Shown here one piece after another: positions 3,646-57,513 of a stretch of DNA of 64,000 nt. The DNA is taken from the IMG/VR virus record IMGVR_UViG_3300044568_003163, positions 124,001 through 188,000 of that record. The stretch is one strand, 5' to 3'. The position numbers and the translations under genes were made by a program. The notes beneath the pieces were generated by a model, which made no database searches, had not been told where the DNA came from, and saw only the letters and a list, made by a program, of their open reading frames with translations. The first letter of the stretch is position 1; each line of letters begins with the position of its first letter.

Positions 3646-3721
3646 ATTAGTTTAATTTGATATACAAATATAAGCAAAAAACTCGACATTAAAAAATGTC
3701 GAGTCATAAAGTTATTAACAA
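3646..3721 (-). promoter_or_regulatory. class I (host-type) promoter with TTGTTAATAACTTT box and embedded terminator hairpin
   Basis: TATATTTG (Bacteroidota -7 TAnnTTTG); near-identical copies at 13561 and 31771. Confidence 0.8.
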
Positions 3722-41128: not shown

Positions 41129-42685
41129 TTAGATGCTTTTAAATTTAGCATATTTCATTGCAGATCTTTTATTGAATATTTGATCGGTTATAGATTTTAT
41201 TCTTTCAGGATCTTCTACGATATTTCCAATTGAATCTTTTGCTTCAAATTCTAGTCCAGCTTGTTTACTATTAGTGGTAGCAGATCTTAATCTAATTTCA
41301 TATGCAATATCAGCAATAGTAACATAATAAAATATAACAAGGTCTAATCGACTAAACGAATCTAATATAACTACTTTAGCAGTATTATCGTTAGAACCAA
41401 TCATAGAAATAGTATCTCCACCATGAAAGAATTCATGAGTACCTTTACTTTTTATCTTGCCTGTGATTTTATGATATGGCGGATTTACGTTTTTATCTGA
41501 TTGTTTTAATCCAAATTTCAAAATACCTATTAGATTATTATCCAGATTAGATGTATCACCATTAGGTAAAGTAAATAAATGATAGACTAATTTTATAGCT
41601 GCGAGTTTATCTCCTAAATTTTGTTCTTTAATGTTATCTACACTTCCAGGATTGTAATGTATTTCCATGTATGAACCTGAATTAAGACCTCCTATCAATT
41701 GCTGATATTTTAATATTTCTGATTTGACCCATGGAATATCTTTTTTATATCGAGATATTTCTTCTGGCGTTAGATTATATATTGCGTCTTTAGGTGATAA
41801 AGATTTTAAATATTCCTTTGCTCTTCCTAATCTAGCAGCTTCTTGCTTTAACGATATTGCAACGATTGAGCCTATCGGTTCAGCAGAAGAAGATCTAGGA
41901 CTAAATTCCGTGCTAAATAATAAATTTAACTCGCCTATAGTAGTAGCATTATTTACATAATTAATTATAGAAGATTTTGCACTTTGGTCTATTAAATATA
42001 CATCTCCAGGACACCAGTTATCAGCAGAACTTAAACTAGAAAGTTTTAAACTTTTGCTTCTAATCATATTAAAAATTTCGTTTCGATCTAATCTATATCC
42101 GCTAGATGCAAAATCGGTCATAACGTTAGCAGTAGATTTCCATTGTAAAATTTGGTCTCGGTTAGCTTTATCGAAATTAGATAACCACGTTTTTAGTTTG
42201 TTTGCAGTTTTAGGATATAAATCTCCAGATGGAATATTATCTACTAAAGAAACTGCTTCAGAAGGGTCCATCGAAAGAATATCTGCATCTTGATTATAAT
42301 AAAAGAAAGCTACCATACCTTCTTTAGTATCTGTATCAGTCGAAGTTTTAGAGTGACCAGTAAATAATCCAGTTTTTAATAAATGAGTTAGAGGAACTTT
42401 TACTCCTTTAACATCCATTAATGGTTCTTTACCTGAAACTTCTTTATCACTTTCTATATACGATTTAATGTAATCTAAATTAGATATGTCTGATACTAAA
42501 AACTTAGAAAATGAGTACAGATCTTTTTTATCATCATCGATCATAAGATAAATATTCGGATCTTCGAGAAATTCTAAAAATTTTGGTCTATATTTCGCCT
42601 TCCTTTTTGGTTCATTCCACGCAGTAGGCAACATAGCAGCTTCATTTAATGACAGAACAAAATCTTTGAATTTTAGCATTTTCAT
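41129..42685 (-). CDS. leader-bearing putative internal head protein with PD-(D/E)xK-like nuclease motif
   Basis: MLKFKDFVLSLNE leader; DNWCPGDVYL...ISLKQ. Confidence 0.65.
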   Translation of the reverse strand: MKMLKFKDFVLSLNEAAMLPTAWNEPKRKAKYRPKFLEFLEDPNIYLMIDDDKKDLYSFSKFLVSDISNLDYIKSYIESDKEVSGKEPLMDVKGVKVPLTHLLKTGLFTGHSKTSTDTDTKEGMVAFFYYNQDADILSMDPSEAVSLVDNIPSGDLYPKTANKLKTWLSNFDKANRDQILQWKSTANVMTDFASSGYRLDRNEIFNMIRSKSLKLSSLSSADNWCPGDVYLIDQSAKSSIINYVNNATTIGELNLLFSTEFSPRSSSAEPIGSIVAISLKQEAARLGRAKEYLKSLSPKDAIYNLTPEEISRYKKDIPWVKSEILKYQQLIGGLNSGSYMEIHYNPGSVDNIKEQNLGDKLAAIKLVYHLFTLPNGDTSNLDNNLIGILKFGLKQSDKNVNPPYHKITGKIKSKGTHEFFHGGDTISMIGSNDNTAKVVILDSFSRLDLVIFYYVTIADIAYEIRLRSATTNSKQAGLEFEAKDSIGNIVEDPERIKSITDQIFNKRSAMKYAKFKSI

Positions 42686-42686
42686 A

Positions 42687-43610
42687 TTAGTTAAATAGTG
42701 TTGGATATAATTGTTCTACTTCAGTTGGCGCTGGCATTTTAGCCGATACAATATAAATTTTAAATCTATTTAGAATAGCATCTAAACGATCTTTGTGTAT
42801 AAATGTTGGTGATGTTGCTAATGCGAATGCATTTTCAAAAGTCATAATTTCGGCAGGTTTAACACCTTCACCAAAAGCAAATTTAACAACTTCTTCTGGT
42901 GTACTCGTAATGAATTTGTCTTGGTCATGTAAAAGAGTGGCAGTTTTAACTAATGAACCCTTTTTGCCCATGAAAGTTTTTTCTACTTGATAGATTCCTT
43001 TCTCTAAACGAATAACATATTGTTTGTATTGTTCGGTTTCTCCGGTTTCCGTTTTCTTAGTAGTTTCTTTCATACATTCAGAAACTATCGACATTAGGAG
43101 TACATTTCGGTACATTCCTTTGTATTTCGATTCTGCAATTTTAAAGTTTGGCGAGTAATACATAAAACGAGACCAATCTAAATTAGTAGAAAGCATAAAA
43201 TCTACTTGTGCAGTTCCACTATTTTTCTTACCTCCTACCGGAACTCCGATAGATATTTGTTCAAATCCTTTTGCAGTTCTAGTTGAATATCCTTCTTTCT
43301 TAAATGTATCTTCTAAAAATTGTAGTGCATCTTCCATCGATATTCCATTAACTCCAGCAATTTTATCTACTGAAACTGCAATATCTATGTCACCACTAGT
43401 AATTTCATCGGCTTTCTTACCATATGAACCAATTGGTGATGCATCAATTCCTTTACCTTCTAATCCGATTAGAGGAAATAAAGTCTTTTCAACCCACTCA
43501 TAAGTAGCAAGTACTTCAGGTTGAGTTAGAGGACGAGAATCCTCAATAGCATTTCCACTTTCGTTCAAAAACGTAGAAACAAAATCTTTAAATTTTAGCA
43601 TATTTCTCAT
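42687..43610 (-). CDS. leader-bearing Pol-beta-superfamily nucleotidyltransferase
   Basis: MLKFKDFVSTFLNE; IGSYGKK...SGDIDIAV...QVDFM. Confidence 0.75.
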   Translation of the reverse strand: MRNMLKFKDFVSTFLNESGNAIEDSRPLTQPEVLATYEWVEKTLFPLIGLEGKGIDASPIGSYGKKADEITSGDIDIAVSVDKIAGVNGISMEDALQFLEDTFKKEGYSTRTAKGFEQISIGVPVGGKKNSGTAQVDFMLSTNLDWSRFMYYSPNFKIAESKYKGMYRNVLLMSIVSECMKETTKKTETGETEQYKQYVIRLEKGIYQVEKTFMGKKGSLVKTATLLHDQDKFITSTPEEVVKFAFGEGVKPAEIMTFENAFALATSPTFIHKDRLDAILNRFKIYIVSAKMPAPTEVEQLYPTLFN

Positions 43611-43612
43611 AT

Positions 43613-43837
43613 TTATTCTTCTTCACATTCATATGCAGGACCAATTCCTTTGATAGGCACCTTTAATTTTTTACCTGTTTTATCGTCAACCACAATTATA
43701 TAATCGCCTTTAACTTCAGCAACTTTTCCTGTATGATTTACGTGAGTTCCAGGAACTATGTATTCGATGATGTTTCCTGGTCGAACATGGGAATATGCTT
43801 CGGCAATAAATTCCTCGTAAGTAGGTAATTTTTTCAT
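43613..43837 (-). CDS. leader-bearing small SH3/KOW-like protein
   Basis: MKKLPTYEEFIAE, nearly the T4 CTS. Confidence 0.7.
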   Translation of the reverse strand: MKKLPTYEEFIAEAYSHVRPGNIIEYIVPGTHVNHTGKVAEVKGDYIIVVDDKTGKKLKVPIKGIGPAYECEEE

Positions 43838-43852
43838 TCTAACTTTCATTTT

Positions 43853-44521
43853 TTATTGAATACCTTTAACCGAATAAGAGGTTATTAATTTTCTGTTATT
43901 TGCTGGTCTAGCCTTAAATGCTCTTAATGGGTAATAGTCATAATCGTGAGATTTTAACATTTTCAATAAATCATCTTTAGTAGCTTCTGACATATCAACA
44001 ATTGTATGTTTCTTACCTAATCTTCGGTTAGTATCATTTCCAATCAACTCAACTTCATCACCCTTTTCAAAAGAATCCTTAGTACCTAATAGTAAATAAC
44101 TTCCACTAGTTAAAAATGCATATAGTCCTTTATTTTCAAAAATAGACCAACCAAACATCGTAGCACCGGTAGTCATATTAATAACACCTACACTAAGTAC
44201 CATTGCTCTTAAAGAACGTCCTTCATTAAGTGAAGACTCACATAAGCTTTCATCAATTTTAGTTACGTTAGCATTTAAGTAATTCAAATCTACGTCGATA
44301 GCTAAACTAACATTTTTCTTTTTAGCCAAATCATTATCTGGCTTAATAGTAATTTCATCTGCAGATCTTCTTCGGTTAAAGAGGCCACTCATTCCTCTAG
44401 GTTTAACTACTTTCCAAGCTTCACCATCTTTGAAATGGATAATTGCATCTACTGGAAAATCTGTTATTTTAAACGAATTAGCTTCATTTAAGAAGTTTTC
44501 GAATGTAGGTATGTTTTTCAT
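43853..44521 (-). CDS. leader-bearing two-module protein
   Basis: MKNIPTFENFLNE; internal ESLCESSLNE. Confidence 0.75.
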   Translation of the reverse strand: MKNIPTFENFLNEANSFKITDFPVDAIIHFKDGEAWKVVKPRGMSGLFNRRRSADEITIKPDNDLAKKKNVSLAIDVDLNYLNANVTKIDESLCESSLNEGRSLRAMVLSVGVINMTTGATMFGWSIFENKGLYAFLTSGSYLLLGTKDSFEKGDEVELIGNDTNRRLGKKHTIVDMSEATKDDLLKMLKSHDYDYYPLRAFKARPANNRKLITSYSVKGIQ

Positions 44522-44536
44522 ATTATGTTATATGTT

Positions 44537-44956
44537 TTAATTTTTTATTGATTCTATTGTTAGTGTACAATCATCCATTAGACTGCCTAAAGCCGTTTGT
44601 ATTGCTGATTGAGATTCATCTGACGTAAACGTAACTAATTTTGTATAGTTTTCATGATGAGCATCAATTAAAAAATGATTCTTTAGCACTTTGAGAACTT
44701 CTGATGCAATTGAAGGTGTATCACAATCAATTTCGTAAGATTTATCTCTAGCTTCATTCATTGGCTTATTGATTTTACCTTTCTTTTCATGAAGAAGTCT
44801 TAATCTTTCTCTAAGGATTGCTTCTTGCTTTTCTCGGTTATCTTCCGGCAAACCTTTGATTTGCTTTTTAATTTCCTTAATTTTAGCTTGAATGTTGTCC
44901 ATTAAAGACTCAGCAGATTCACTAATAAATTCTTCAAATGTAGGTAAGTTCTTCAT
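44537..44956 (-). CDS. leader-bearing protein
   Basis: MKNLPTFEEFISE. Confidence 0.75.
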   Translation of the reverse strand: MKNLPTFEEFISESAESLMDNIQAKIKEIKKQIKGLPEDNREKQEAILRERLRLLHEKKGKINKPMNEARDKSYEIDCDTPSIASEVLKVLKNHFLIDAHHENYTKLVTFTSDESQSAIQTALGSLMDDCTLTIESIKN

Positions 44957-44964
44957 AGGTTAAT

Positions 44965-44995
44965 TTGCTATACAAATATAAACAATTTTCTCGAA
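44965..44995 (-). promoter_or_regulatory. host-type promoter (TATATTTG) without upstream box
   Basis: TATATTTG at 44973-44980. Confidence 0.5.
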
Positions 44996-45015
44996 AGAAA
45001 AAAATTTATTTGAAA

Positions 45016-46428
45016 TTATTTTTTGTGATTTTCTTTCCAAATTCCTTGCAACCAATCGTGCAATTCTTTGTTATTGTCTTTCTTACCAATGCCGTATTCT
45101 TTAATAAATTCAGCTTTAAATTCATCAAAAGTAGCAGCCTCTTCAGCCATAATATGAACATCACCCATAGCAGATTCTGCAATAAAAGTAGAAGATTCTT
45201 TGATATTAGTTTCCCAATAATCATGAAGTTTTTCAAATTCTTTACGACCCATATTAGCAATCATGTACTCTACGATATCGTTATCGTAGTCTTCCGCTTC
45301 ATCTCTATAACCACCTGGAGTATCAATATATTTGCTACCCATGATTCTTTTGATTCTAACTTCTGGCATTCCATCAATTTCTTCTAAGAATTCTTCAAAG
45401 TCTTTAGTTGCTTTGAATTTTTCAGCTTCATTAACGTAAGACTCTTTCATTAATGCTAAAGCACCTAATTCACTTAATGTAACTTTTGCGCCTTTATCTT
45501 TACCATTAACAGAAGAATGATATAACAATCCAGCATTAAACAATCTTTTTAAAACTTCACCTTTAACTAAATCAAAGCTAATTGTATCGCTTACATTATC
45601 CCATGAATCTACTACATATTCCGGTTCAATCCAACCATAACCTCTTTTAATGTTTTTAATCAAAGTTTCTACGTCTTTGTCGAATTGCTTAGCGGCAGCT
45701 TCATTAACTGAAGATTCAAATACTTGAGTATCATCCTTATTCCATTCACCTCTTTTAACAAATCCATGAACTGTAAAATTTGCTTGAGATATTCCGGTAG
45801 CTTTTACCAATTTGTTAATAGCATCGACTTCTACTTTTGCGTTGCTAATTCCTTTGATATACTTAAATTTGTATGTCTCTTTATTTTTAAAATCTAGAAC
45901 TTTAAAACCGTCGTAAAATTTAGTCATATCTCCTTCATTAATAACAGATTCATTAAGATAACCGTTATGTCTAAGATATTTTATCAAATCATTTTTATCT
46001 CTAGAAGGTATTTTATCAGCGTTGATTGTATATCCATCTTTTGATTTTACTACATCAATATCTGATTTTACATAAAGATTTTGACTGATCCATTTAATTA
46101 AACGTGTATGGTCAATGTCTGAAATATTCTTAAGATTAATATTTTCTTCATTAACAGATTTAACTTTACCTGAAAGAATTTTCTTAGCTTTGTCTAAGTC
46201 TCTTTGATTTTTGAAGATTAAGTTACCATCATCAGATACTTGAGGAAATGCATAATGTTGGTAAGGAATTCCTTTAAACAAAACATTCAAATAAGCAGTT
46301 GTTAAATTCATGTTAGCTGGCAAATCGTCATAATTAATGCGATATTTCGTATCCCATAGCTTTGCTTTCGGATCATTTAAAATGTCTTCATTTACGAAGT
46401 CTTCGTAAGTTGGTATATGATTTTTCAT
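45016..46428 (-). CDS. leader-bearing putative polyprotein (about six modules)
   Basis: MKNHIPTYEDFVNE; five internal SVNE/SVINE/SSVNE/SYVNE/FIAE linkers. Confidence 0.75.
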   Translation of the reverse strand: MKNHIPTYEDFVNEDILNDPKAKLWDTKYRINYDDLPANMNLTTAYLNVLFKGIPYQHYAFPQVSDDGNLIFKNQRDLDKAKKILSGKVKSVNEENINLKNISDIDHTRLIKWISQNLYVKSDIDVVKSKDGYTINADKIPSRDKNDLIKYLRHNGYLNESVINEGDMTKFYDGFKVLDFKNKETYKFKYIKGISNAKVEVDAINKLVKATGISQANFTVHGFVKRGEWNKDDTQVFESSVNEAAAKQFDKDVETLIKNIKRGYGWIEPEYVVDSWDNVSDTISFDLVKGEVLKRLFNAGLLYHSSVNGKDKGAKVTLSELGALALMKESYVNEAEKFKATKDFEEFLEEIDGMPEVRIKRIMGSKYIDTPGGYRDEAEDYDNDIVEYMIANMGRKEFEKLHDYWETNIKESSTFIAESAMGDVHIMAEEAATFDEFKAEFIKEYGIGKKDNNKELHDWLQGIWKENHKK

Positions 46429-47442
46429 TTATGATTGGTTTAATTTTTTTCTTAATTCTTTATAAAATGGATGAACCGATTTAGGAGTTAAAATCTTAAA
46501 TGCAGTTTCATCGTCAGCTAAAATAGCTTCTCTAACTTTAGTTCCTGAAGGACCACCTTCTTGTCTGCTATCAACCATTGCAACCGAAAATTCATCAACA
46601 GGTACATCAGATTTTTCAGATGTTAAATAGGCAACTTGTCTTTCATAATCTTTTTGTCTATCAGATCCACAACCTACACCAATCGGATTAAATCCCTTTT
46701 CTTGAATAAATTTTACCATTTGAGGTATTACTGTCTTATTACCAAGAGGGTACATCGCAAATTCTTGAATAAAATCAAATTCACCAGCTACTCGATGACC
46801 TATTTTTGATAATAGAAGAACATCAAATGGAGATTTTTCGGTCTTTGAAAATATTTGTAATGGGATAACAGGACAACCAAATGCCTGTGAAGTTCTTCTT
46901 AGAGCTTCAATATGTCCATTATGAAATGGTTGAAATCTACCAGGAAATATACATACTCGTTTGCCATCGATAGTAGCTTCGAATACTTCGTTTTCGTTTA
47001 ATTTATCAATAAAGCTTCTAAACATTGGTTTTACTTTATCGGCTAATTTACTAAATAGTCCAGGATTTTCTTCTGGAACTACATCCGGAGAAGCATTTCT
47101 AATAGTACTATCTACCATATAATCGTTAACAAAAACTTTAGCATCTTCTTCAGTTTCTATTTTACGTTGAACCATACTGAAATCTCCAGTGTCTTGTAAC
47201 ATCTCACGTGAAGTAGTAGGAGATACTGCAAAATGATTACCGAGTTTTTTATTCATATCACCAAAAGCAACATCTACTGTCTTTCCAACAATAGTACCTA
47301 TTAAGTCTTTTACTGTATTTTGTACCTTTTCATCTTTAATAATTTGCAAAGCAAAATATTTGATAGCTGGTGACATAGATTCACAGATGATCTGTTCATT
47401 TGATTCGTTAACGAAATCTTCAAAATGAGGTATGTTTTTCAT
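46429..47442 (-). CDS. leader-bearing HxGH nucleotidyltransferase (cytidylyltransferase/NMNAT-like)
   Basis: MKNIPHFEDFVNE; FPGRFQPFHNGH, GSDR, SGTKVRE. Confidence 0.8.
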   Translation of the reverse strand: MKNIPHFEDFVNESNEQIICESMSPAIKYFALQIIKDEKVQNTVKDLIGTIVGKTVDVAFGDMNKKLGNHFAVSPTTSREMLQDTGDFSMVQRKIETEEDAKVFVNDYMVDSTIRNASPDVVPEENPGLFSKLADKVKPMFRSFIDKLNENEVFEATIDGKRVCIFPGRFQPFHNGHIEALRRTSQAFGCPVIPLQIFSKTEKSPFDVLLLSKIGHRVAGEFDFIQEFAMYPLGNKTVIPQMVKFIQEKGFNPIGVGCGSDRQKDYERQVAYLTSEKSDVPVDEFSVAMVDSRQEGGPSGTKVREAILADDETAFKILTPKSVHPFYKELRKKLNQS

Positions 47443-47721
47443 TTATTCTTCTAGTTTTAATTGTTTGATCGGTTTAACGAAAGATGAATCTACATTTGTA
47501 AAAATTTCACCATAATAATCATCTAAAATATCATAAAATACTTTAGCTTTAGAAAAACTAACTTTTACAATAGTTCCAAAACGATAATCTCGAGTAATTT
47601 TTCGATCATCTGCTTGTTTAGCCGATGGCACAAAATCCACTTTATCATCTATTGAATAGGCTGATGGAAATTCAGTAGCACCTTCGTACAAGAAATTATC
47701 AAATGTAGGTATGTTTTTCAT
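47443..47721 (-). CDS. leader-bearing small SH3-like protein
   Basis: start reassigned to MKNIPTFDNFLYE. Confidence 0.75.
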   Translation of the reverse strand: MKNIPTFDNFLYEGATEFPSAYSIDDKVDFVPSAKQADDRKITRDYRFGTIVKVSFSKAKVFYDILDDYYGEIFTNVDSSFVKPIKQLKLEE

Positions 47722-47722
47722 A

Positions 47723-48910
47723 TTATTTACGGCATTCACCTTCTTTAATTGCAAATTCTTGAGCAATAGATTTAATCGCTCTATCGTCAGTATTTGATAT
47801 CGAAGTATGGAAGAATTTACTACCATCTTCATTTTTAAATAAACCTTTTACTGATTTACCCATCCAAGTTTTCCAAGGAAGAGATTCACCATAAGCTTTA
47901 ATAGCTTTGTCTCCGGTTTTGATTGTTACTTTGTTATTATTACTTGCCGCTGCTACATATTTTTTAGCATCTGCATAATTCTCATCCATATAAGCATTAA
48001 AATACTTTACGAATTTTTTTGCGTTTTCATTATCTTCAGCTGAAGAGATGAATTTTTGTTCAATGATTGTGTAGAATATAATGTCAACTACATTGGTAAT
48101 TGATTGAACTTCTATTCTAATTCCTAAATCAGGAGATAAACTTTCGTTTATGAATTTCTTAAATGTAGGAACTTTGCTTTCATTATATGGAAACCTAACA
48201 TCGATTTTACCACCAGAAAGAGATTTAGCAACTTTATTAACTTGATTTGGTTCAATCTTAGGCATTTCTGGTCTTGGTGGAGCACCAGCTGGAGGACCAA
48301 ATTTTTGTATCAATTTAAGACCAAGTTGAACCTTTGATTTATTAGCTTCATACCAAGCAACCGCCTTTTCTTTATTATAGAATTGAGGTTCCATGTTTTG
48401 ACCATCATATATACAATTCTCAATATCTTTAATTGTTGCATTGAATATATTGACATCTCCACCAGAAGGAATTCCACCTCTTTCGTTACCTAAAGCATCA
48501 CCGGCTTGTCTTAAAACTGGAACTAAGTCACCAATAGATAATTCAGCTTTAGCACCAATTACTTTAGCATTTGGATCGTTAAACATAGTAGCTGCCCATC
48601 GATGATGACCATCTAATATTCTATTATCTGAAGATATTATTGCATCTAACTTACCTCCTTTAACCCCAGCAATTGCTAGTCCTAATGCTTTACCTAAATA
48701 AACAGCATCTTGTGACGGTTTAAGTGATTTAGCAGGAATACCAGCATCTTTTGTAATTACGATATCATCGGTTGGATTTCCATCTCTTTTACCGTCAGTA
48801 AAAAAATCTGGATCGTTTTTATCGCCTGGATTAGGAAATTTTACCGGATTTATTTCTTTCGTACTTAATTCTTCATTTAAGAATTGCTCGAACGTAGGTA
48901 TGTTTTTCAT
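47723..48910 (-). CDS. leader-bearing ParB/Srx-like protein fused to a second leader-bearing module
   Basis: LKPSQ...ILDGHHRWAA; internal KVPTFKKFINE. Confidence 0.75.
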   Translation of the reverse strand: MKNIPTFEQFLNEELSTKEINPVKFPNPGDKNDPDFFTDGKRDGNPTDDIVITKDAGIPAKSLKPSQDAVYLGKALGLAIAGVKGGKLDAIISSDNRILDGHHRWAATMFNDPNAKVIGAKAELSIGDLVPVLRQAGDALGNERGGIPSGGDVNIFNATIKDIENCIYDGQNMEPQFYNKEKAVAWYEANKSKVQLGLKLIQKFGPPAGAPPRPEMPKIEPNQVNKVAKSLSGGKIDVRFPYNESKVPTFKKFINESLSPDLGIRIEVQSITNVVDIIFYTIIEQKFISSAEDNENAKKFVKYFNAYMDENYADAKKYVAAASNNNKVTIKTGDKAIKAYGESLPWKTWMGKSVKGLFKNEDGSKFFHTSISNTDDRAIKSIAQEFAIKEGECRK

Positions 48911-48926
48911 ATAATATGTATCTCGT

Positions 48927-49799
48927 TTAATAACTCCAATTAGCGGCTATACTAACTTCAAGATTCCACCTTTTTGCAAAGGTTTCCATTAAGTCATATA
49001 TCTTAGAACTTAACTCAGAGTACTTTTGATATTCTTTTGATGACGTAGTATCTCCACCATATTCATTTTCATGACGATATTGTCTAGGTTCATCAATTCT
49101 CATTCTAACTTCTTTGTGAGCTAATACTAATCTAGGTTCATTACAAGTTATGCCTAATTTTTTAGCACTATTCCACATTTCACTGAAGATAGGAGATATT
49201 TTTTCTTTAACTTTTTTCCAATCAGTTTCAATTTTAAGTCTTTCTGCAATTATTTTCTTTGCAGTTCGAGGATTAAAATATTCTCCATTTTTCTTTTCAT
49301 AAGCATCGAAAATACCTACAATATCTTGTAGAACTTCATTATGCTTAGAAATTGATTTATAAGTTCCATAAACTACACTTCCAGTTTCTAACATATTTCC
49401 ATTTTCTGGGTGTCTGATACCGTCAAAATAATGTCCAAATTGATAAGAAGGACCACGAGTACCATCTCCGCAAGAATATTGAAAAGGTCCATCTGCATAA
49501 GTAGCTCTACTCATTCCTTTAATTCCAATAACTACAACCAAAGTACCTCCATAATTCCATTCTGAACGATAAACATATACGTCAATAGGCACTTTTAAGT
49601 TTTTACTTAAGAATCTAACGGCTTCCATTCCTTTAGCGAAATTAGAATTAGTTTCGTTGCCTTCAGGTGTTCCTTTAATAGCTTTAAAGAAATTAGCCGG
49701 AGACATTGGCTCCATAGAATTAAAAAGAGGTTTATTAGAACCTTTAGCGTAAATAACGTCCTCATTTAGGAAGTTCTCAAATAATGGTATGTTTATCAT
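48927..49799 (-). CDS. leader-bearing protein
   Basis: MINIPLFENFLNE. Confidence 0.75.
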   Translation of the reverse strand: MINIPLFENFLNEDVIYAKGSNKPLFNSMEPMSPANFFKAIKGTPEGNETNSNFAKGMEAVRFLSKNLKVPIDVYVYRSEWNYGGTLVVVIGIKGMSRATYADGPFQYSCGDGTRGPSYQFGHYFDGIRHPENGNMLETGSVVYGTYKSISKHNEVLQDIVGIFDAYEKKNGEYFNPRTAKKIIAERLKIETDWKKVKEKISPIFSEMWNSAKKLGITCNEPRLVLAHKEVRMRIDEPRQYRHENEYGGDTTSSKEYQKYSELSSKIYDLMETFAKRWNLEVSIAANWSY

Positions 49800-49811
49800 A
49801 ATTTTTGTATT

Positions 49812-50159
49812 TTAATATTCAAATGGTGGAGTTTCGTAATCTGATTTCTTAACAGCAAACCAATTTCTATCTATTTTAAAATACCACCAACCTCGAGAAG
49901 AATCTATTACATAATGATTTCCTTTAAGTTTATATCCTTTATAACCGCCTCGTGTAAAGAATTTAGTTATAGGAGTTTGGTCTGGCCAAGTTTTATTGGT
50001 TGATTGAGCTTGTATGGATCTACCATCGAAAGTTGCAAGAAAAATATCTACGACACTTCCTTCAGATCTTTCTTCTCCGGCAAATTCTTTAATACCAGGT
50101 AGCATCGCTTCAACTGCTTCGTTGATAAATTCATCAAAAGTAGGTATGTGATTTTCCAT
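49812..50159 (-). CDS. leader-bearing protein
   Basis: MENHIPTFDEFINE. Confidence 0.75.
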   Translation of the reverse strand: MENHIPTFDEFINEAVEAMLPGIKEFAGEERSEGSVVDIFLATFDGRSIQAQSTNKTWPDQTPITKFFTRGGYKGYKLKGNHYVIDSSRGWWYFKIDRNWFAVKKSDYETPPFEY

Positions 50160-50617
50160 TATCTAGGTAATTGAGTTTTGTTCATTACTACCATTGTAGC
50201 ATATTTTGCATTAGTATGTTGTAAAACCCATGTAACTGGTCCTATTGACTCAAAATATTTTTTAAATGATGGATCGTTTTGTATTTTTGCATAGTCAGCG
50301 CTTGATTGTCTTGCTGCATTAACATTACAAAAAATAGCTCCTCTGTATTTAAAAGGTCCTTCCTCTGTATTTAATTCTCGGATTTCAAATCCCATATCGG
50401 AAGGATCGAAATCATCGTAACCTAAGTCAAATAAAACTTTAACTAGAGCCTGTCTTGTTTTTTCAGCTTCTTTAGCGATATTTGCAACCCAATTCCAATT
50501 AGAAATTTCTTGCTTAACGTCTGCTACGAAATTTTTATCAGCAGGAGTATTGAAAGATTTCCAAGCTCCGCTATCAGCTTCATTTATAAATGAGCTAAAA
50601 GATTGTAAGTTTTTCAT
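50159..50617 (-). CDS. leader-bearing protein
   Basis: MKNLQSFSSFINE. Confidence 0.75.
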   Translation of the reverse strand: MKNLQSFSSFINEADSGAWKSFNTPADKNFVADVKQEISNWNWVANIAKEAEKTRQALVKVLFDLGYDDFDPSDMGFEIRELNTEEGPFKYRGAIFCNVNAARQSSADYAKIQNDPSFKKYFESIGPVTWVLQHTNAKYATMVVMNKTQLPR

Positions 50618-50636
50618 ATTTTTATTTAGATGATCG

Positions 50637-51098
50637 TTATTTTATTAGTAAGTTTTTGAAAAAATCTCGTTCGTCTGCCTTTACTGCATATAAGTAAAAA
50701 CTTCTATCATTTCCATTAACATATCTTATTGATTTGATAGATTTCATTTCTAAAACTCCTAATTGAACTGGATTTAAAGGGAATGTTATATCAGTTATAC
50801 CATCACACGTTAATTCAATATTCGATCTAATTGTCATATATTTGCCATCGACAAAAGTAAATATTAATGCATCTCTTTTACTGCATTTTCCAATATTTAA
50901 TTTTATTGTGATTAAATAATTTTTTTCAGATATTCCATTATATTTTTTAAAATGAGGTATAATGGTAAACCATTTACTTCTGTCTTCAGTAGAACAGATC
51001 AACATAGAATTTTCTTCCTTTTTAGTTGTAGGCTGTTCGTTTTGTGAATTACCAACAAATGTTAGTAATAAAAATAGTAAGATGCATAATTTTTTCAT
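50637..51098 (-). CDS. secreted hypothetical protein (no leader)
   Basis: Sec signal peptide MKKLCILLFLLLTFVGNS-Q. Confidence 0.7.
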   Translation of the reverse strand: MKKLCILLFLLLTFVGNSQNEQPTTKKEENSMLICSTEDRSKWFTIIPHFKKYNGISEKNYLITIKLNIGKCSKRDALIFTFVDGKYMTIRSNIELTCDGITDITFPLNPVQLGVLEMKSIKSIRYVNGNDRSFYLYAVKADERDFFKNLLIK

Positions 51099-51112
51099 TA
51101 GATTTATATTTT

Positions 51113-52378
51113 TTATGAATAAGCTTCGATGTCATATTGAATTCTTTCTAAAGGAGTTTCGTCGTTGCAAAGATTTTTCTTAACCCAATCAAGTAAACCT
51201 GGTTCAAATTTAGCATTTTGTGCCATATCATAAGCATTTTCTGCACCACCATTACCGGACATATCTTTAACCCATTTGTCATATATCTTTTTATTCCATG
51301 AATGTGCTTTTTGTTTCTGTGCATGAGGTCCATTACCTAAAGTAGAGAAAACCGCCATAGATGAATTAGGAATAAATACGTCTAATAAACCTTCAGTGCC
51401 TGATTTACCATTGTCATATTTAATTTCTCTTCTAAATTTTGCCAATGCATAATCTGCAGATGCTATTTGAGATGAACTTGACATTGCTCCAGTTTTCTTA
51501 CCGTAAGCTTTTTTAAGTTGCAGTTGTTTATCTGGATCGATTTCAAAGTGAATATCTCTGATATAATCATCAAACCAACCTTCATTTAAAAAAGATTCCA
51601 TAATACATTCATAAACATCACCTTTGAAGTTTTGGAGACCTCTTTCTTTACTATAATATAAAGTCAATGGTTGGTTACTACGATTTAGTAAATCAATTTC
51701 TTTGATATTACTCGAACCTCCTAATATTTTCTTTATCGTATAGGTTCCTACATCTCCAGTTCTACTATTTTTTAATTCTATAGTATCTTTTACTTTCATT
51801 TTAGATACGTCAAAATCTTCATTCACACCTTCCATAAGATTACCACCTCCATCAATTCCAGCACTATGCCAATATTCACCTTTACCATTATAAGTTTTAG
51901 TAAATGCTACATACTCTTTTGTTTTAGGATTCCAAAAGTGACTTTCACCATTAGAGGCTGTCATCATTTTTAAAATACCACTTTTAGCATCTTTTATCAG
52001 TTTTAATTGAACTGCTCTAGTTAAAGGCTCTCTAACTTTTAGTTTAGAAGGACTAGCTGCTGATAATGCTTCATCGATTTGCAAAGATTCTAGCATTTCA
52101 GGAGTTTCATTAAAATTTAAACTATTTCCTGATGCAACCGAAATTCCAGCAGCACCTCTAAGAGAAACTCGTAAATTGAATTTATCTCCTTTTTCGTTTT
52201 CTGCTGCTAAATCTCGAGTAGCATTAGTTTTTTGACCATAAGCTATAATAGTATAAGTTTCGGCTTTAGTTTTAATTACTGATCCAATTCTTAATTTATT
52301 AGCATCTTTAGGACTTAAATATCCTTCATTAATGATTGACTCATTAACAAAATCTTCAAATGTAGGTATGTTTTTCAT
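51113..52378 (-). CDS. leader-bearing putative polyprotein (about four modules)
   Basis: MKNIPTFEDFVNESIINE; internal ESLQIDE, EGVNE, ESFLNE. Confidence 0.75.
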   Translation of the reverse strand: MKNIPTFEDFVNESIINEGYLSPKDANKLRIGSVIKTKAETYTIIAYGQKTNATRDLAAENEKGDKFNLRVSLRGAAGISVASGNSLNFNETPEMLESLQIDEALSAASPSKLKVREPLTRAVQLKLIKDAKSGILKMMTASNGESHFWNPKTKEYVAFTKTYNGKGEYWHSAGIDGGGNLMEGVNEDFDVSKMKVKDTIELKNSRTGDVGTYTIKKILGGSSNIKEIDLLNRSNQPLTLYYSKERGLQNFKGDVYECIMESFLNEGWFDDYIRDIHFEIDPDKQLQLKKAYGKKTGAMSSSSQIASADYALAKFRREIKYDNGKSGTEGLLDVFIPNSSMAVFSTLGNGPHAQKQKAHSWNKKIYDKWVKDMSGNGGAENAYDMAQNAKFEPGLLDWVKKNLCNDETPLERIQYDIEAYS

Positions 52379-52390
52379 GGTTATATAATT

Positions 52391-53200
52391 TTAGTATCTT
52401 CCGTATCCTACTGAGCTTTCAAATGAACCTACAAAGTAATTAGTTCCATCAACATCGATCGTTACAGATGAAGATAATTCGGTAATGTCTACTTGAGTAA
52501 ATCCAATAGAATTAGAAATTGTTTTATTATCAACTCTAGAAACATCTTTATTGATTTCGATTTTAGAATCAGGAGTTAATTTGATTTTGTTTTTTCTAAG
52601 ACCAGCAATTATCATTTTATAAACTCTTTCAAAATCTGATCCTGAATATGCAGAATAGTTACATTCTTTGTTTACTGCAACTGCTAAGTTTAATCTAGCA
52701 GCAGGTGTTCCGGTTGACCAAGATTTTAAAACTTCAATCAAATTAGTTAGTGCATCTTTCATTGCTGGCAAATCTTTATTTTCAACAGTAAACGAAGGCT
52801 CGATTAATTTAACCGCTTCAGTAATAGGTCCTTGAGACCTTCCTCCTGGCGAAGCATCAGTATATATGAATGCCAAAAATTCAATAATTGGTGCAGTTGC
52901 TTTACCTGATCTTAAATAATCAGCAGCAGACTTAGCAACTTCTTTGAATTGAGCACCTGGAGATTTAGTAAAATAGCTAGGTCTTAATCCAGCAGATGGC
53001 CAACCTGCATCATAATGAAATAAAGTAAATAGTGGTTCGTGATCGATTCCATCTTTATAACCTTTAGCCGATCTAAATCGTAAAGTTTTTTGTAATGCAT
53101 GAGAAGTAGCAAAATCTAATCCATTTTCTTGTAGAGCTTCGTTGATAGAAGTTAATTTTGATTCATTAACGAAATTCTCAAATGTAGGTATATTTTTCAT
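52391..53200 (-). CDS. leader-bearing protein
   Basis: MKNIPTFENFVNE. Confidence 0.75.
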   Translation of the reverse strand: MKNIPTFENFVNESKLTSINEALQENGLDFATSHALQKTLRFRSAKGYKDGIDHEPLFTLFHYDAGWPSAGLRPSYFTKSPGAQFKEVAKSAADYLRSGKATAPIIEFLAFIYTDASPGGRSQGPITEAVKLIEPSFTVENKDLPAMKDALTNLIEVLKSWSTGTPAARLNLAVAVNKECNYSAYSGSDFERVYKMIIAGLRKNKIKLTPDSKIEINKDVSRVDNKTISNSIGFTQVDITELSSSVTIDVDGTNYFVGSFESSVGYGRY

Positions 53201-53208
53201 TTATGTGA

Positions 53209-53514
53209 TTACTTTTTATTAATAGTTACGCTAAAGGTATATTCTTGATTGCCAGGAACTTGTATATAAATGTCATATTTTTTAGCATTATCCCAAAGAG
53301 ATAATGACGTACCAAAAGATTGATGCATGTAAAATACTACACTATCACCTTTATCCCAGATTTGACTGATAGCATATCTAGGAGAAGTATACATCTGATC
53401 CTCTAATATTTTTTTAAAGTGAGGATAAGATTTACACAACTCTTCGTATTGTTTGAAATTCTCAGTTGTAGATGATTCGTTTACGAATCCGTCAAAGGTA
53501 GGTATGTTTTTCAT
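53209..53514 (-). CDS. leader-bearing protein
   Basis: MKNIPTFDGFVNE. Confidence 0.75.
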   Translation of the reverse strand: MKNIPTFDGFVNESSTTENFKQYEELCKSYPHFKKILEDQMYTSPRYAISQIWDKGDSVVFYMHQSFGTSLSLWDNAKKYDIYIQVPGNQEYTFSVTINKK

Positions 53515-53616
53515 TATAGTTCTTTAGATAATCTACTAATAATTTCTTGGTTATTAGCGATACGTTTTTGATTTTTAAGTTGGTTACCTCTATTAGGTTT
53601 TTGTTTGCCTTCTTTT

Positions 53617-53895
53617 TTAGATTTCGACATTATGTTTGATTATTTTGATTCGAACATCAGATGTTCCTTGTATAATTCTATGTATCTCACCGCATTTGAT
53701 GAATATTTCTTGATTAAGAGAAATAGGCAATTGGTTATCGAATTGAAACTGCCAATCCGTAGAATCCATTGCTTGAATGGTTCTATCTTGTTCATCCCAA
53801 TGCCATTTGAATTCTTCAGGATGAGTATCAGCACTAAATGTTCTTATAAAAACATTATCTCCTAAATCTTCTTCTATAAAGGGCAATTCTACCAT
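53617..53895 (-). CDS. cupin-like small protein
   Basis: WHWDEQDR...WQFQFDNQLP...HRII. Confidence 0.65.
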   Translation of the reverse strand: MVELPFIEEDLGDNVFIRTFSADTHPEEFKWHWDEQDRTIQAMDSTDWQFQFDNQLPISLNQEIFIKCGEIHRIIQGTSDVRIKIIKHNVEI

Positions 53896-54434
53896 GGATT
53901 GTCAGATGAAAGTCCTAATTGTTTAGTAAAAAGTGAAGGAGCATAGCAAGCCCAAAATCCTTTTTTAGAAGGATCCATTTTCTTTTGTAAATCACATTGT
54001 TGTCTAGCCCAAAAAGATGAAGCAGCTCCTTCATCGGCATTATTAATTGCACGATTTGGATCTCCCCATTCTATTTTAGTAGCAATGATATTTCCATCAT
54101 CATCTTTCTTACCACTGTTGTGATAAACTTGATATTTTTGTTCTCCGCCTCTTTGTGGTGTGTCTAATTTAACATCTATCCATGAATCATTGTCAGTTTT
54201 GAATTTAGCCTTTTTACCTACTTCTAGGTTCTTTGCCATCCAAGCTGATTTTCCATTTAAGATGATATTTCCTTTGTCCCAATATTGTTTTGCCTCTTCA
54301 AATAAATCATCATAAGCTTGTGAACCTAAACGAAATACTGAAGTAGATAAATCTAGTCCATTTGCTTGGTGATATTTGAAAGCTTCTGAAGAGTTTTCGC
54401 GAATGAAATCTTCAAATTCTGGTATGTTTTTCAT
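53889..54434 (-). CDS. leader-bearing protein
   Basis: MKNIPEFEDFIRE; WGDP...FWARQQC...FWAC. Confidence 0.75.
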   Translation of the reverse strand: MKNIPEFEDFIRENSSEAFKYHQANGLDLSTSVFRLGSQAYDDLFEEAKQYWDKGNIILNGKSAWMAKNLEVGKKAKFKTDNDSWIDVKLDTPQRGGEQKYQVYHNSGKKDDDGNIIATKIEWGDPNRAINNADEGAASSFWARQQCDLQKKMDPSKKGFWACYAPSLFTKQLGLSSDNPW

Positions 54435-54444
54435 ATAATTTTAT

Positions 54445-54490
54445 TTTTATAGTACAAATATAAACATAATTTCCGATACTAGGAAATTAT
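54445..54490 (-). promoter_or_regulatory. host-type promoter (TATATTTG) with hairpin
   Basis: TATATTTG at 54455-54462; ATAATTTCC/GGAAATTAT. Confidence 0.5.
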
Positions 54491-54602
54491 TTTAAACCCT
54501 TTTTAATTTCGTCGTATATCATGAGCATAAAAAGTAGGCCCATTATTCCAGCAAAGAAAGGTAGGCAATTAGGTTCAGAATTCACTGCATTAAACGATTA
54601 TT

Positions 54603-55544
54603 TTAGTATATGTCACCGGTTCTTAACATAGAAGATATGTCTGTAAAATATGCCATTTCTTCTGGAGTTAATTTAGATTTAATATATTTTCCAATTGTTG
54701 CTAATTCTCGAGCTCTGGCACTATATGCATTGGCCTTATATGGTGGCAAATCTTGATACATTTGTGCAAGTCTCGTATCACCATCAAATTTCTTAACGAT
54801 TTCAGCAATTAGTTCTTTTCTTTTACCTTTTGCTGCCATCTTAGCTTTTGACTCAGCTTTATTAGCAATTGCTTCTGCTGCATCTCCAAGAACATTACCT
54901 ACAACAGGTAAACCTTTAGCTAACGCCCATAAACCAGCTATTCCAACTGCTACGCCTATTGCAACATCGGCAATTAGACCAGCATCTTCGTTAATTACTG
55001 ATTCTCTGATCGAAATTTGCAAATGTTTCTTTATTGCAACTTTCATTTTAGTAATACTATTAATATTTTTATTCAACGGAGATTGTTGTCTTCCATCTTT
55101 GTATAATTCTATATAAGTATCACCCTCAGCACCACTAACTACTCTAATAGTACATAATGGATATTTTACGTTATTATAATCATCGTGGTATAATCTTCCT
55201 CTGCCGATAGGAGTTACATATGATTTAGATTCTTTACGAATCCAACCATTTTGTGTTAATACATCACCAAAGTCATGGCTATTATTTTCGTTTATTGATT
55301 CTCGAATTTCAAATCCATCAGCTTCGATTGCTTTTTTAGCTTTACGTAATTCGATAGCGTTAAGTGCCTTAACTACCATTTGTTCTGAATCATGTATTGC
55401 TGGTTCTGCAATTGCATCAACTCCAGCATCCATCAGAACATTTTGAATGTATTCTACGTCATCGTCGTCAGTATTATATTGAATCGAAAATGTATATTCT
55501 TTTGCTTCGTTGATGAAATCTTCAAATGTAGGTATGTTTTTCAT
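54603..55544 (-). CDS. leader-bearing putative polyprotein (three modules, last with a TM helix)
   Basis: MKNIPTFEDFINE; internal IRESINE and IRESVINE. Confidence 0.75.
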   Translation of the reverse strand: MKNIPTFEDFINEAKEYTFSIQYNTDDDDVEYIQNVLMDAGVDAIAEPAIHDSEQMVVKALNAIELRKAKKAIEADGFEIRESINENNSHDFGDVLTQNGWIRKESKSYVTPIGRGRLYHDDYNNVKYPLCTIRVVSGAEGDTYIELYKDGRQQSPLNKNINSITKMKVAIKKHLQISIRESVINEDAGLIADVAIGVAVGIAGLWALAKGLPVVGNVLGDAAEAIANKAESKAKMAAKGKRKELIAEIVKKFDGDTRLAQMYQDLPPYKANAYSARARELATIGKYIKSKLTPEEMAYFTDISSMLRTGDIY

Positions 55545-55550
55545 TTATGT

Positions 55551-55838
55551 TTATATTTTGATTTTTTTAACTTCGTAACCAGTATAAGAATCTTTGTCTT
55601 CTGGGTTGTGGAACCTATAAAAGGTCTTAAATTCATAATCATGTCTAGCTGGATTAAACCACTCATCATCATATTCATATTCATGGCTTTCTGCCCATTT
55701 CTCAGCTTCGATCTTAGAATTCCAATATTCTAATGTATAAGGAACATCATCTCCATGATCGCCATAAAAGATAACTTGCCATTTTTCATTTTTAACCGCT
55801 TCGTTAATAAACTCTTCTAATGTAGGTAGTTTGTGCAT
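55551..55838 (-). CDS. leader-bearing protein
   Basis: MHKLPTLEEFINE. Confidence 0.75.
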   Translation of the reverse strand: MHKLPTLEEFINEAVKNEKWQVIFYGDHGDDVPYTLEYWNSKIEAEKWAESHEYEYDDEWFNPARHDYEFKTFYRFHNPEDKDSYTGYEVKKIKI

Positions 55839-56218
55839 TATTTACTTTTTGGTATATTTCTATTGAAAATTATTGAAGATTCATTATCGTTAACTCTAAC
55901 TATTCTAAAATATATTCGATTCGTTTTGTCTTGATACAATGTTCGATTTAAACTTCCTACTGTACCTGCTATAGGAAATAGATTTTCTACCTTTTGAATA
56001 AATAATTGTTCATCTTTTAAATTCTTAAAATAAACATTAATATACAATTCAGATTTAGAACCAGATGCAAATCTAGAAACATTACTATCAAATCTCACAC
56101 CAGATACTAAAGTCTTCATACTATTTATTGAAGATTCTATATCTGCTTTAAGAGATTCCTTGTTGACCGGAGTTCCGCTTTCGTTTAAGAACTCTTCAAA
56201 AGTAGGTATGTGATTCAT
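55838..56218 (-). CDS. leader-bearing protein
   Basis: MNHIPTFEEFLNE. Confidence 0.75.
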   Translation of the reverse strand: MNHIPTFEEFLNESGTPVNKESLKADIESSINSMKTLVSGVRFDSNVSRFASGSKSELYINVYFKNLKDEQLFIQKVENLFPIAGTVGSLNRTLYQDKTNRIYFRIVRVNDNESSIIFNRNIPKSK

Positions 56219-56223
56219 TGTGA

Positions 56224-57513
56224 TTATTTTTTATATGCGATCATCGAACGGATTTGGTGCAATGGTGCAAAAATTCCAGTATACTTGTAAAGCTTACCTT
56301 TAAATAAGAAAGTAATTCCTTCGGTAGGCACTATTGATTCTAAACCACCAGCAGCAGCAACTCTACTCAATTCATGTTCTAATTTTTCAATGTCTTTCTC
56401 ATCGCCATTAACTCTAATTTTAGCAATAGAATCCTCTATTTCTTTTTTCATAGTCATGGCAGCTTCAGTTGGATTTGCGGATAAAAATGATGTGATATTT
56501 TTCATCATTTCCGTTCCTATTTCTAAGAAGATATTTTCAAGAGGAGCGTAAACTTCTCTCTTCCAAGCTTTTGCTTTTTTCTTTTCTAAATCAATAAACC
56601 AATTTGCGTTATCACCTAAGTCTTTTTTGATTTGTCCTACTGAGTAAGATTTATCAATATCTGCAAGTCTTCTAGCTAATCCATCAAGTGAATTTTCCGG
56701 CAAAGTAATTCCAGCATCATTAGCTTCTCTTGTGATAATGTTCTTACCCATACCTAAAGCATAATCACCAACAGTAGATGTTTGATTACAATTAGAATCC
56801 GACATTATTTGTGATAGTTTATCAGCATAGTATTTAGCTCTCGCTTTAGTATTTGGTAGCGGTTGATATGCAATATCTTGAGGACCTCTAACGAAGAAAG
56901 TTTCTTGTGCTGCTGCATTAGCGTCAGCTATTAACTTACCTAATTCTCTAGCTGCTTGTTTGTCTTCATCGATTACATTTGCAGCTTCATCATACTCAAC
57001 AACTCCATGAAACACTAACATATTTTGTCCATAAGGCACAGTATTTTGTGTAACTGGTGTGATTATTTCTACTGATGCAAATTTTTGTCCTTCGTTAAAA
57101 AATCTCTTTTTATCTTTATCTGATAGAGAACCTATCGAAGCAGTAAGATCAGCCATAGCTGCATTAAATGCAATTTCTATATCACCTCTACCGGCAAAAA
57201 GTTCTGCAGTTGTAGCAGAATTTAAAGCATTTTCACCAAAGTTTTTAAGGTGAGTTTTATTTCTCGCTGAAATCAATTGACCATTCTTCCAAGAGATAGA
57301 AAGTTGTTGACCATCAGTTTTTTCTTGTACAAAGTTTTCTGGACCGAACGCTCCATTAACGGTAGTTTGTAGCATTTCTTCTAAATCCAAAAAGGTCAAC
57401 CCGATATCCTCGAAAGGATGTGCGAGATGACCATAGGCACCACCCTCATTGAGAGGTACGTTAATGGATTCGTTCAATTTCTTAACGAAATCGTTAAATT
57501 TAAGTAGTTTCAT
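56224..57513 (-). CDS. leader-bearing ATP-dependent ligase-fold protein (DUF6267-like)
   Basis: MKLLKFNDFVKKLNE; HLAHPFED, EKTDG (KxDG), EII, EGITF, YKYTG. Confidence 0.65.
   Translation of the reverse strand: MKLLKFNDFVKKLNESINVPLNEGGAYGHLAHPFEDIGLTFLDLEEMLQTTVNGAFGPENFVQEKTDGQQLSISWKNGQLISARNKTHLKNFGENALNSATTAELFAGRGDIEIAFNAAMADLTASIGSLSDKDKKRFFNEGQKFASVEIITPVTQNTVPYGQNMLVFHGVVEYDEAANVIDEDKQAARELGKLIADANAAAQETFFVRGPQDIAYQPLPNTKARAKYYADKLSQIMSDSNCNQTSTVGDYALGMGKNIITREANDAGITLPENSLDGLARRLADIDKSYSVGQIKKDLGDNANWFIDLEKKKAKAWKREVYAPLENIFLEIGTEMMKNITSFLSANPTEAAMTMKKEIEDSIAKIRVNGDEKDIEKLEHELSRVAAAGGLESIVPTEGITFLFKGKLYKYTGIFAPLHQIRSMIAYKK

Follow-up and report, generated by a model that had tools for sequence, protein, structure and literature searches.

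A 64,000-nucleotide stretch of DNA (the window), bases 124001 to 188000 of the IMG/VR virus record IMGVR_UViG_3300044568_003163, carries an array of genes that share an N-terminal leader, several of which encode chains of small domains joined by short linkers ending in Glu. We read these chains, with a probability of roughly 75%, as capsid-targeted cargo polyproteins of a huge T4-related phage that would be cut into separate proteins by the prohead protease, in a manner akin to the T4 internal-protein (IP) system. The leader-plus-linker organization itself is real and widespread. In the 294,034-bp contig that holds the window (32.8% G+C), ∼44 genes open with MKN[IL]PT[FY]E[ED]F[VIL]NE, and in 13 of these the site recurs internally, dividing the chain into two to six unrelated folded modules. 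About 17 of the ∼44 leader genes, single- and multimodule, make up the cargo array at 43613..56218 (43.6 to 56.2 kb of the window). The minus strand carries nearly all genes of the contig, and all features located below by window coordinates lie on it.

The leader resembles the capsid targeting sequence (CTS) of T4. IPII and IPIII of T4 (read from NC_000866) begin with MKTYQEFIAE, and the leader is likewise an N-terminal propeptide-like segment of 10 to 20 residues that ends in the gp21 cut pattern (hydrophobic, any residue, Glu). Residues 4 and 7 of the T4 CTS serve capsid targeting, and residues 8 and 10 serve processing by gp21 (PMC9026906); the aligned leader positions are F/Y, F, V/I/L, and E, respectively. 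In a set of 150 leaders, the search pattern fixed the E at P1 and accounts for the I, V, or L found at P3 in 99%, but it did not impose the N seen at P2 (76%) or the G, A, or S at P1′ (62%). One window gene starts with MKKLPTYEEFIAE, whose final six residues are identical to those of the IPII/IPIII tag. The leader is thus a candidate homologue or analogue of the T4 CTS. The methionine of MKKLPTYEEFIAE (nucleotide 43837, 74 amino acids) is the probable true start in open reading frame (ORF) 43613..43849, as is that of MKNIPTFDNFLYE (nucleotide 47721, 92 amino acids) in ORF 47443..47832, the mechanically called start lying too far upstream in both cases.

The fullest polyprotein in the array is a 470-amino-acid protein encoded at 45016..46428. 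Its T4-CTS-like leader, MKNHIPTYEDFVNE (46387..46428), is followed by six modules: M1 (residues 15 to 94), M2 (95 to 160), M3 (166 to 243), M4 (244 to 334), M5 (335 to 418), and M6 (419 to 470). All five internal linkers claimed in the initial annotation, which was made from the letters of the window without database searches, are present as quoted, and their spacing, given there as about 70 to 95 amino acids, measures 66 to 91. Linker 1 is KSVNE (residues 90 to 94; 46147..46161), and linker 2, quoted as NESVINE, is a paired site in which NE is followed directly by SVINE (residues 159 to 165; 45934..45954). Linkers 3 and 4 are FESSVNE (residues 237 to 243; 45700..45720) and KESYVNE (residues 328 to 334; 45427..45447), and linker 5, KESSTFIAE (residues 410 to 418; 45175..45201), ends in FIAE, as does the T4 CTS.

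Domain boundaries in this protein were examined in an AlphaFold2 model built on an alignment of 30 colinear homologues (mean predicted local distance difference test [pLDDT] score, 76; predicted template modeling [pTM] score, 0.35). The leader and all five linkers contain residues below a pLDDT of 50. The low-scoring segments are residues 1 to 3, 8 to 24, 54 to 60, 88 to 94 (linker 1), 161 to 164 (linker 2), 239 to 241 (linker 3), 328 to 334 (linker 4), and 413 to 421 (linker 5), and all of them belong to the leader or a linker, save residues 54 to 60 inside M1. The blocks between linkers score 80 to 95. A low pTM score with confident domains is as expected if the modeled chain resembles beads on a string.

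The linker motif is concentrated in leader-bearing proteins. Counted genome-wide beyond residue 30, ES.{0,3}[ILV]NE occurs 11 times in the 6,661 amino acids of leader proteins versus 5 times in the 71,178 amino acids of other proteins, making it ∼23-fold commoner in the former (Poisson P = 3.8e-12), and for [ILV]NE with a small or acidic residue after it, the corresponding counts are 20 and 27 (P = 4.2e-12). Internal junctions (n = 273) and leader ends (n = 150) have N at P2 in 69% and 76% of cases, respectively, and share G, A, S, or D at P1′; neither P2 nor P1′ was imposed by the search. Per-gene significance was assessed with composition-preserving shuffles. By this measure, the 470-amino-acid protein is the only gene product clearly significant by itself (P = 0.00025), and 51113..52378 (P = 0.014) and 43853..44521 (P = 0.019) are moderately so. 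As 54603..55544 (P = 0.09) and 47723..48910 (P = 0.39) are not significant alone, those two genes rest on the comparative evidence given below. Genome-wide, [ILV]NE is densest in a protease-scaffold fusion, an expected substrate of the prohead protease (8 sites in 637 amino acids; P = 1.8e-6), and the 470-amino-acid polyprotein ranks second.

Intervals between strict sites peak at 50 to 100 amino acids (median, 80.5). Only ∼10% of internal sites are paired, so excision of a spacer would be the exception and not the rule. The initial annotation, which had one leader loading a concatemer that is cut often via paired sites, overstated that last point; the concatemer itself is computationally supported by the modules, their boundaries, the motif, and the protease gene. 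Linker codons match the ordinary synonymous usage of the genome, and leader codons differ synonymously between copies, so the conservation of linkers and leaders acts on the peptide. The same observations speak against the linkers being repeats conserved at the DNA level, an idea that we therefore rejected. The genome was also searched for paralogues of the modules, and none turned up; the 470-amino-acid protein is therefore not a tandem-repeat protein. Across homologues that are ∼50% identical, the linkers are the best-conserved columns.

To see how the modules occur elsewhere, we ran an exhaustive HMMER search with the 470-amino-acid query against 1.84 billion representative proteins. Nearly all of the 283 matches span one or two modules, with the matched query ranges clustering near residues 155 to 245, 235 to 337, and 325 to 415, and the matching proteins (82 to 1,131 amino acids) place a module anywhere along the chain. 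At least 283 protein clusters thus contain modules that stand alone behind their own leader, are reordered, or are combined differently. A hydrophobic-x-Glu site is found at 124 of 133 boundaries on the upstream side of modules and at 96 of 116 on the downstream side, compared with 18% and 28%, respectively, at random positions, and the exceptions are mostly near-variants such as ESSVYE and ESLTNE. For M5, 50 of the 53 homologues have a site at the boundary that corresponds to linker 4. The initial annotation had proposed that modules might be found stand-alone or reshuffled in relatives; both were seen, with breaks exactly at linkers. Behind leaders of their own, M1 stands alone in P0041, M5 in P0069, M3 as a 92-amino-acid protein in L010 that starts right behind the leader, and M4 as 98-amino-acid proteins in L008 and L012. 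Permuted orders include M5-M3, M4-M2, and M2-M6-M3. These multimodule architectures recur in independent JGI, ENA, NCBI, and Logan assemblies. Among GenBank phages, neither the region (megablast) nor the 470-amino-acid protein (tblastn) had a match, so that metagenomes are the only known source of the modules.

In a syntenic relative, IMGVR_UViG_3300043775_003011, the flanking genes are 88 to 97% identical to those of the window. Array gene content varies between the two phages, and six array genes differ, always at a linker, by gain or loss of whole modules or by gene fusion. The 470-amino-acid, six-module protein of 45016..46428 corresponds to a 570-amino-acid protein in which one module has been replaced and two have been inserted. 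The 222-amino-acid, two-module product of 43853..44521 is reduced to module 1 (91 amino acids), and two of the four modules of 51113..52378 remain. In 46429..47442, the window has a leader, an N-terminal module, and an enzyme domain; in the relative, the leader stands directly on the enzyme domain (193 amino acids). The 395-amino-acid product of 47723..48910 is a fusion of what in the relative are two genes (256 and 152 amino acids), each with a leader, the two states differing by an ∼57-nucleotide deletion between two leader copies. Finally, 54603..55544 has no counterpart, and three unrelated leader genes take its place.

Internal ES-x-[VIL]NE linkers are present in the five leader genes listed in the initial annotation and also in 46429..47442. 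The 421-amino-acid polyprotein of 51113..52378 consists of a leader with a double site (FVNE followed directly by SIINE) and four modules (residues 19 to 103, 104 to 187, 188 to 266, and 267 to 421). The three linkers claimed for it were found as ESLQIDE, a variant with D at P2 (residues 97 to 103; 52070..52090), MEGVNE (182 to 187; 51818..51835), and MESFLNE (260 to 266; 51581..51601). The first boundary is shown by L015, in which module 104-187 follows a leader. In L011, module 188-266 occurs with flanking ESVVNE, and residues 267 to 421 stand alone behind their own leader in a 171-amino-acid protein of L014. The 313-amino-acid product of 54603..55544 comprises a leader and the modules A1 (residues 14 to 86), A2 (87 to 186), and A3 (187 to 313), and both of its reported linkers, IRESINE (80 to 86; 55287..55307) and IRESVINE (179 to 186; 54987..55010), are there. 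A search for loci related to this gene found none; its homologues came from a protein search. Their module boundaries carry a site in 80 of 94, 91 of 92, and 50 of 52 cases, the latter two counts being those for internal A1 downstream and internal A3 upstream boundaries, respectively. P0152, which is 96% identical to the 313-amino-acid protein, consists of A1 and A3 without A2, and modules of different window genes share chains elsewhere (A1-M3-x and M3-A1-M1-A3). A3 (54603..54986) has a Gly/Ala-rich hydrophobic helix (…GLIADVAIGVAVGIAGLWALAKG…) straight after the second linker and is C-terminal in 40 of 53 homologues; given this helix and position, A3 may be membrane active.

The remaining polyproteins of the array are shorter or less regular. 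The single linker reported for 43853..44521 is CESSLNE (residues 94 to 100; 44222..44242). In 47723..48910, the whole internal leader noted earlier, NESKVPTFKKFINE, occupies residues 243 to 256 (48143..48184) and has no in-frame start codon. The 337-amino-acid product of 46429..47442 has a leader, an N-terminal module, and, from residue 153, a cytidylyltransferase-like domain, with the junction DKLNE, followed directly by NEVFE, at 46978..47007.

The contig encodes the head proteins that a T4-type targeting system would require. Its major capsid protein is Gp23 of the T4 type (PF07068; E = 5e-36), its portal is of the T4 (gp20) type (PF07230; E = 1e-72), and its single S77 prohead protease (PF03420; 47.8 to 49.9 bits, with a cutoff of 27) aligns to T4 gp21 (PDB 5jbl; E = 7.8e-6). 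In that alignment, the protease stretches ELDHP and SSR, which we take to hold the catalytic His and Ser, stand opposite ELNAP and ASR of the 5jbl chain, respectively. The protease is fused to an ∼450-amino-acid tail that looks scaffold-like, and the 637-residue fusion is encoded outside the window on the minus strand (genome positions 245208..247121; L013 7208..9121). The array lies ∼65 to 78 kb away from this head module; further leader-bearing genes border those for the protease, capsid, and portal. The nearest GenBank matches of the capsid protein come from an uncultured 462-kb phage (56% identity), Lak megaphages of Prevotella (36%), and Tenacibaculum, Chryseobacterium, and Flavobacterium phages. 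Given these nearest capsid proteins, the host is probably a member of the Bacteroidota.

Leaders and linkers appear to vary together between lineages. A second leader class found in other phages, MKKSELRELIREQVRNLIKE (20 residues, with the predicted cut after an …[IL]KE end), precedes the same modules with the same boundaries (P0014, P0042, P0051, P0056, P0073, P0083, and others). P2 is K or T in 19 of the 34 linkers of this …[IL]KE class versus 5 of 115 in the FxNE class (P = 9e-11 by a Fisher test that treats related sequences as independent, which weakens its support for our reading). In the cultured Chryseobacterium phage MA9V-2, a 1,207-amino-acid protease-scaffold protein is full of [IL]NE sites followed by S, the N terminus of the capsid protein shows the same motif, and the leaders are short and of the FINE type. 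A search of MA9V-2 found no exact long leader, and its 268-amino-acid leader protein has no convincing linkers.

Under the mechanism that we propose, the leader, 13 to 18 residues long, would attach the entire polypeptide to the prohead scaffold core. Within the prohead, cleavage by the gp21-type serine protease behind the terminal Glu of the leader and of each ES-x-[VIL]-N-E linker would release two to six independently folded proteins of ∼50 to 150 amino acids in equal numbers. These pieces would be too large to exit the shell and would pass into the host with the DNA, as IPI*, IPII*, and IPIII* do in T4. Leader and linker together also appear to serve as a universal in-frame joint at which recombination adds, removes, swaps, fuses, or splits modules, giving rise to a fast-evolving combinatorial cargo set. 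The identity of the linker as a prohead protease site is supported indirectly, by the shared signature, the density of the motif in a likely substrate, the covariation with leader class, and selection on the peptide.

Several observations weigh against this interpretation. Cleavage in T4 depends on accessibility, and a motif alone is no guarantee of cutting. The alignment behind the 470-amino-acid model consists partly of fragments that end near linkers, which could lower confidence there. Linkers buried within folded domains, which the initial annotation had named as speaking against its reading, are not seen in that model, but the model of the 54603..55544 product has a mean pLDDT of 48 and is uninformative on boundaries. 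Among module-bearing database proteins, 89 of 150 have no recognizable leader, a group that includes both truncated gene calls and proteins with another conserved N terminus. A third conserved N terminus, MAQLNKISSFKSFSE…, heads polyproteins of 466 to 915 amino acids. We identified no polyprotein of this kind in a cultured phage, and the searches for function recovered only the cytidylyltransferase-like domain among the modules.

The alternative that we take most seriously, although we consider it unlikely, is that the chains are multidomain "polyvalent" cargo ejected intact, with ES-x-VNE acting as a flexible connector or left behind as a fusion scar. Scars of this kind do occur, the internal leader of 47723..48910 having arisen from a leader-to-leader deletion, and some polyvalent phage proteins are known to stay intact, the virion RNA polymerase of N4 being one (PMC5512222). 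However, a passive connector needs neither the N at P2 nor the small P1′ residue that make the linkers identical to the leader end, would not covary with leader class between lineages, and would hardly remain the best-conserved part of proteins that have diverged to ∼50% identity. Most linkers are also 6 to 7 residues long and not decaying full leaders, and the protease-scaffold protein is itself rich in the motif. This last point, a motif common to scaffold and polyproteins, is also what would be expected if the chains were sacrificial core or scaffold-like filler, cut at the linkers into pieces that are expelled or that have structural or DNA-packing roles, as with gp22, gp67, and gp68 of T4, and are not effectors. 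Multiple propeptide-clearing cuts are known in T4, phiKZ, and SPN3US (PMC5694885, PMC9026906), and our searches yielded no effector function. We regard this filler explanation as improbable all the same. Scaffold and core proteins would be expected to be extended or coiled-coil members of a conserved head module and to give short peptides, whereas the pieces here are folded domains of 50 to 150 amino acids from variable genes, within the range of T4 IP precursors (95 to 193 amino acids), and mature T4 IPs stay in the head (PMC5694885, PMC3012670). In addition, one module is a nucleotidyltransferase-like enzyme, and the sharp presence/absence differences between near-identical phages fit accessory or arms-race genes and not an essential scaffold.

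Two further explanations have little in their favor. The leader might not be a capsid address but act, for instance, in secretion or translation, in which case the linkers would be repeats unrelated to it; capsid targeting does rest here on resemblance to T4. We consider this very improbable, as the leader is acidic and amphipathic without a hydrophobic core, aligns residue for residue with the T4 CTS as mapped by experiment (PMC9026906), is synonymously varied in its codons, and is found on genes beside those for the protease, capsid, and portal. The least credible explanation is an artifact, in which assembly chimeras or gene-call run-ons across repeated leaders produced the chains and AT-rich composition produced the motif. 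The contig is indeed metagenomic, and the leader is repeated ∼44 times in it. Nevertheless, the same architectures come from the four independent assembly sources, the linkers (∼18 nucleotides) are too short and too varied synonymously to mislead an assembler, the motif is enriched specifically in leader proteins in one genome of uniform composition, and the shuffle controls were exceeded.

What the predicted cargo proteins do is suggested by only a few matches. The domain in 46429..47442 is cytidylyltransferase-like, i.e., nucleotidyltransferase-like (PF01467, phrog_3041), and the N terminus of the 54603..55544 product weakly matches the PHROG "internal head protein" (E = 6e-4). Beyond these and uncharacterized PHROG matches, Pfam (relaxed to an E value of 1) and PHROGs gave no further module match, Foldseek of the 470-amino-acid model against PDB gave no match below an E value of 0.5, and in the ESM Atlas only viral hypothetical proteins matched. 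Residues 54 to 159 of 47723..48910 contain the motif ILDGHHRWAA, which hints at a nuclease fold of the ParB/sulfiredoxin type; no Pfam match bears this out, and the sole match of the region is phrog_2859, a family without an assigned function. ParB domains of the DdrB type occur in phage heads (PMC5512222). An effector role, directed against the host or its defenses, would fit the T4 precedent and the hypervariability of the modules, on which the word "effector" is based here.

The tag, the protease, and the cut rule appear to be those of the T4 internal-protein system, and the polyprotein chain is what would be new. IPI, IPII, IPIII, and Alt of T4 likewise have a short N-terminal tag of the pattern T-[YF]-x-E-F-[IV]-x-E, are cut by gp21 after a Glu with a hydrophobic P3 (predicted here) (PMC9026906), come from a phage that encodes the same trio of gp21-type S77 protease, gp23-type capsid protein, and gp20-type portal, and are small, highly variable, and clustered in plastic regions (PMC3012670). 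Unlike here, where ∼44 genes are tagged and 13 are multimodule, T4 has a handful of tagged genes and makes one mature protein per tag; the leader here also has a three-residue insert (N-I-P), and its P2 is nearly always Asn. Polyvalent proteins share the presence of several unrelated domains per chain (six in the 470-amino-acid model), an architecture that varies strongly between orthologues, predicted codelivery with DNA, and a suspected role in host conflict (PMC5512222). In contrast, they are large, have recognizable enzymatic domains, and are thought to be cut by their own MPTase/peptidase domain (PMC5512222), whereas the modules here are small, mostly of unassigned fold family, and joined by a uniform linker that matches the site of a trans-acting prohead protease, behind a T4-type tag. 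Searches of Pfam and PHROGs found none of the conflict-repertoire domains (MPTase, ART, DarB-type methylase-helicase, DdrB-like ParB, and others), and Pfam found no peptidase domain within the polyproteins, leaving the separate S77 protease as the only candidate.

Several x-x-Glu cuts in one substrate are also known from phiKZ, 201phi2-1, SPN3US, and gp22, gp67, and gp68 of T4 (PMC5694885, PMC9026906, PMC10052503). There, however, the extra sites lie in long propeptides or scaffolds and are read as fragment clearance (PMC5694885), whereas here they lie between folded domains that can be reshuffled. No description of CTS-led polyproteins, that is, chains of small cargo modules joined by prohead protease sites, was found in the openly accessible full-text literature. 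A parallel exists in pp220 and pp62 of African swine fever virus, precursors that a viral protease cuts at a short consensus site during maturation, each into several virion proteins in equal numbers. That protease, its motif, and the lineage are unrelated to those discussed here, and the products are fixed structural proteins and not shuffling accessory modules.

Other members of the array are 43613..43837, 44537..44956, 47443..47721, 48927..49799, 49812..50159, 50159..50617, 52391..53200, 53209..53514, 53889..54434, 55551..55838, and 55838..56218. Inside the array, a 153-amino-acid gene (50637..51098) has a lipoprotein-like signal peptide (MKKLCILLFLLLTFVGNSQ…) and no leader. A longer leader variant, MK[LM]LKF[NK]DFV…LNE followed by S or A, heads three genes that flank the array (41129..42685, 42687..43610, and 56224..57513; 307 to 518 amino acids), for which a Pfam search gave no match above threshold. 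The motif TTTATATTTGTA occurs 10 times when one mismatch is allowed, versus 3.1 expected. Exact copies at 44971..44982 and 54453..54464 are just upstream of leader genes 44537..44956 and 53889..54434, and further sites are at 3663, 13579, and 31789. The motif resembles the −7 promoter element of the Bacteroidota, TAnnTTTG.

Proteins injected with phage DNA act ahead of phage gene expression and form the first line of counterdefense; to our knowledge, few are known, among them IPI* and Alt of T4 and the Dar proteins of P1. If the chains described here are cut as predicted, the leader and the ES-x-VNE rule would delimit hundreds of candidate injected proteins from metagenomes, with exact mature ends, and would explain how many cargo species fit into one capsid despite limited docking sites. 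It would also place the polyprotein strategy, typical of eukaryotic viruses, in tailed phages. With the same joint as a ready-made design, a single construct could load T4-type capsids with several foreign proteins. For the phages themselves, we put at about even odds the broader proposal that the huge T4-lineage phages of Bacteroidota have a plug-and-play cargo system, which would be the first polyprotein strategy described for tailed-phage cargo and in which joints are both cleavage sites and recombination points that coevolve with protease specificity, any small ORF can be added in frame, and one docking event loads many host-directed proteins equally. If that is true, these phages would hold a large reservoir of injected effectors, comprising at least hundreds of module families.

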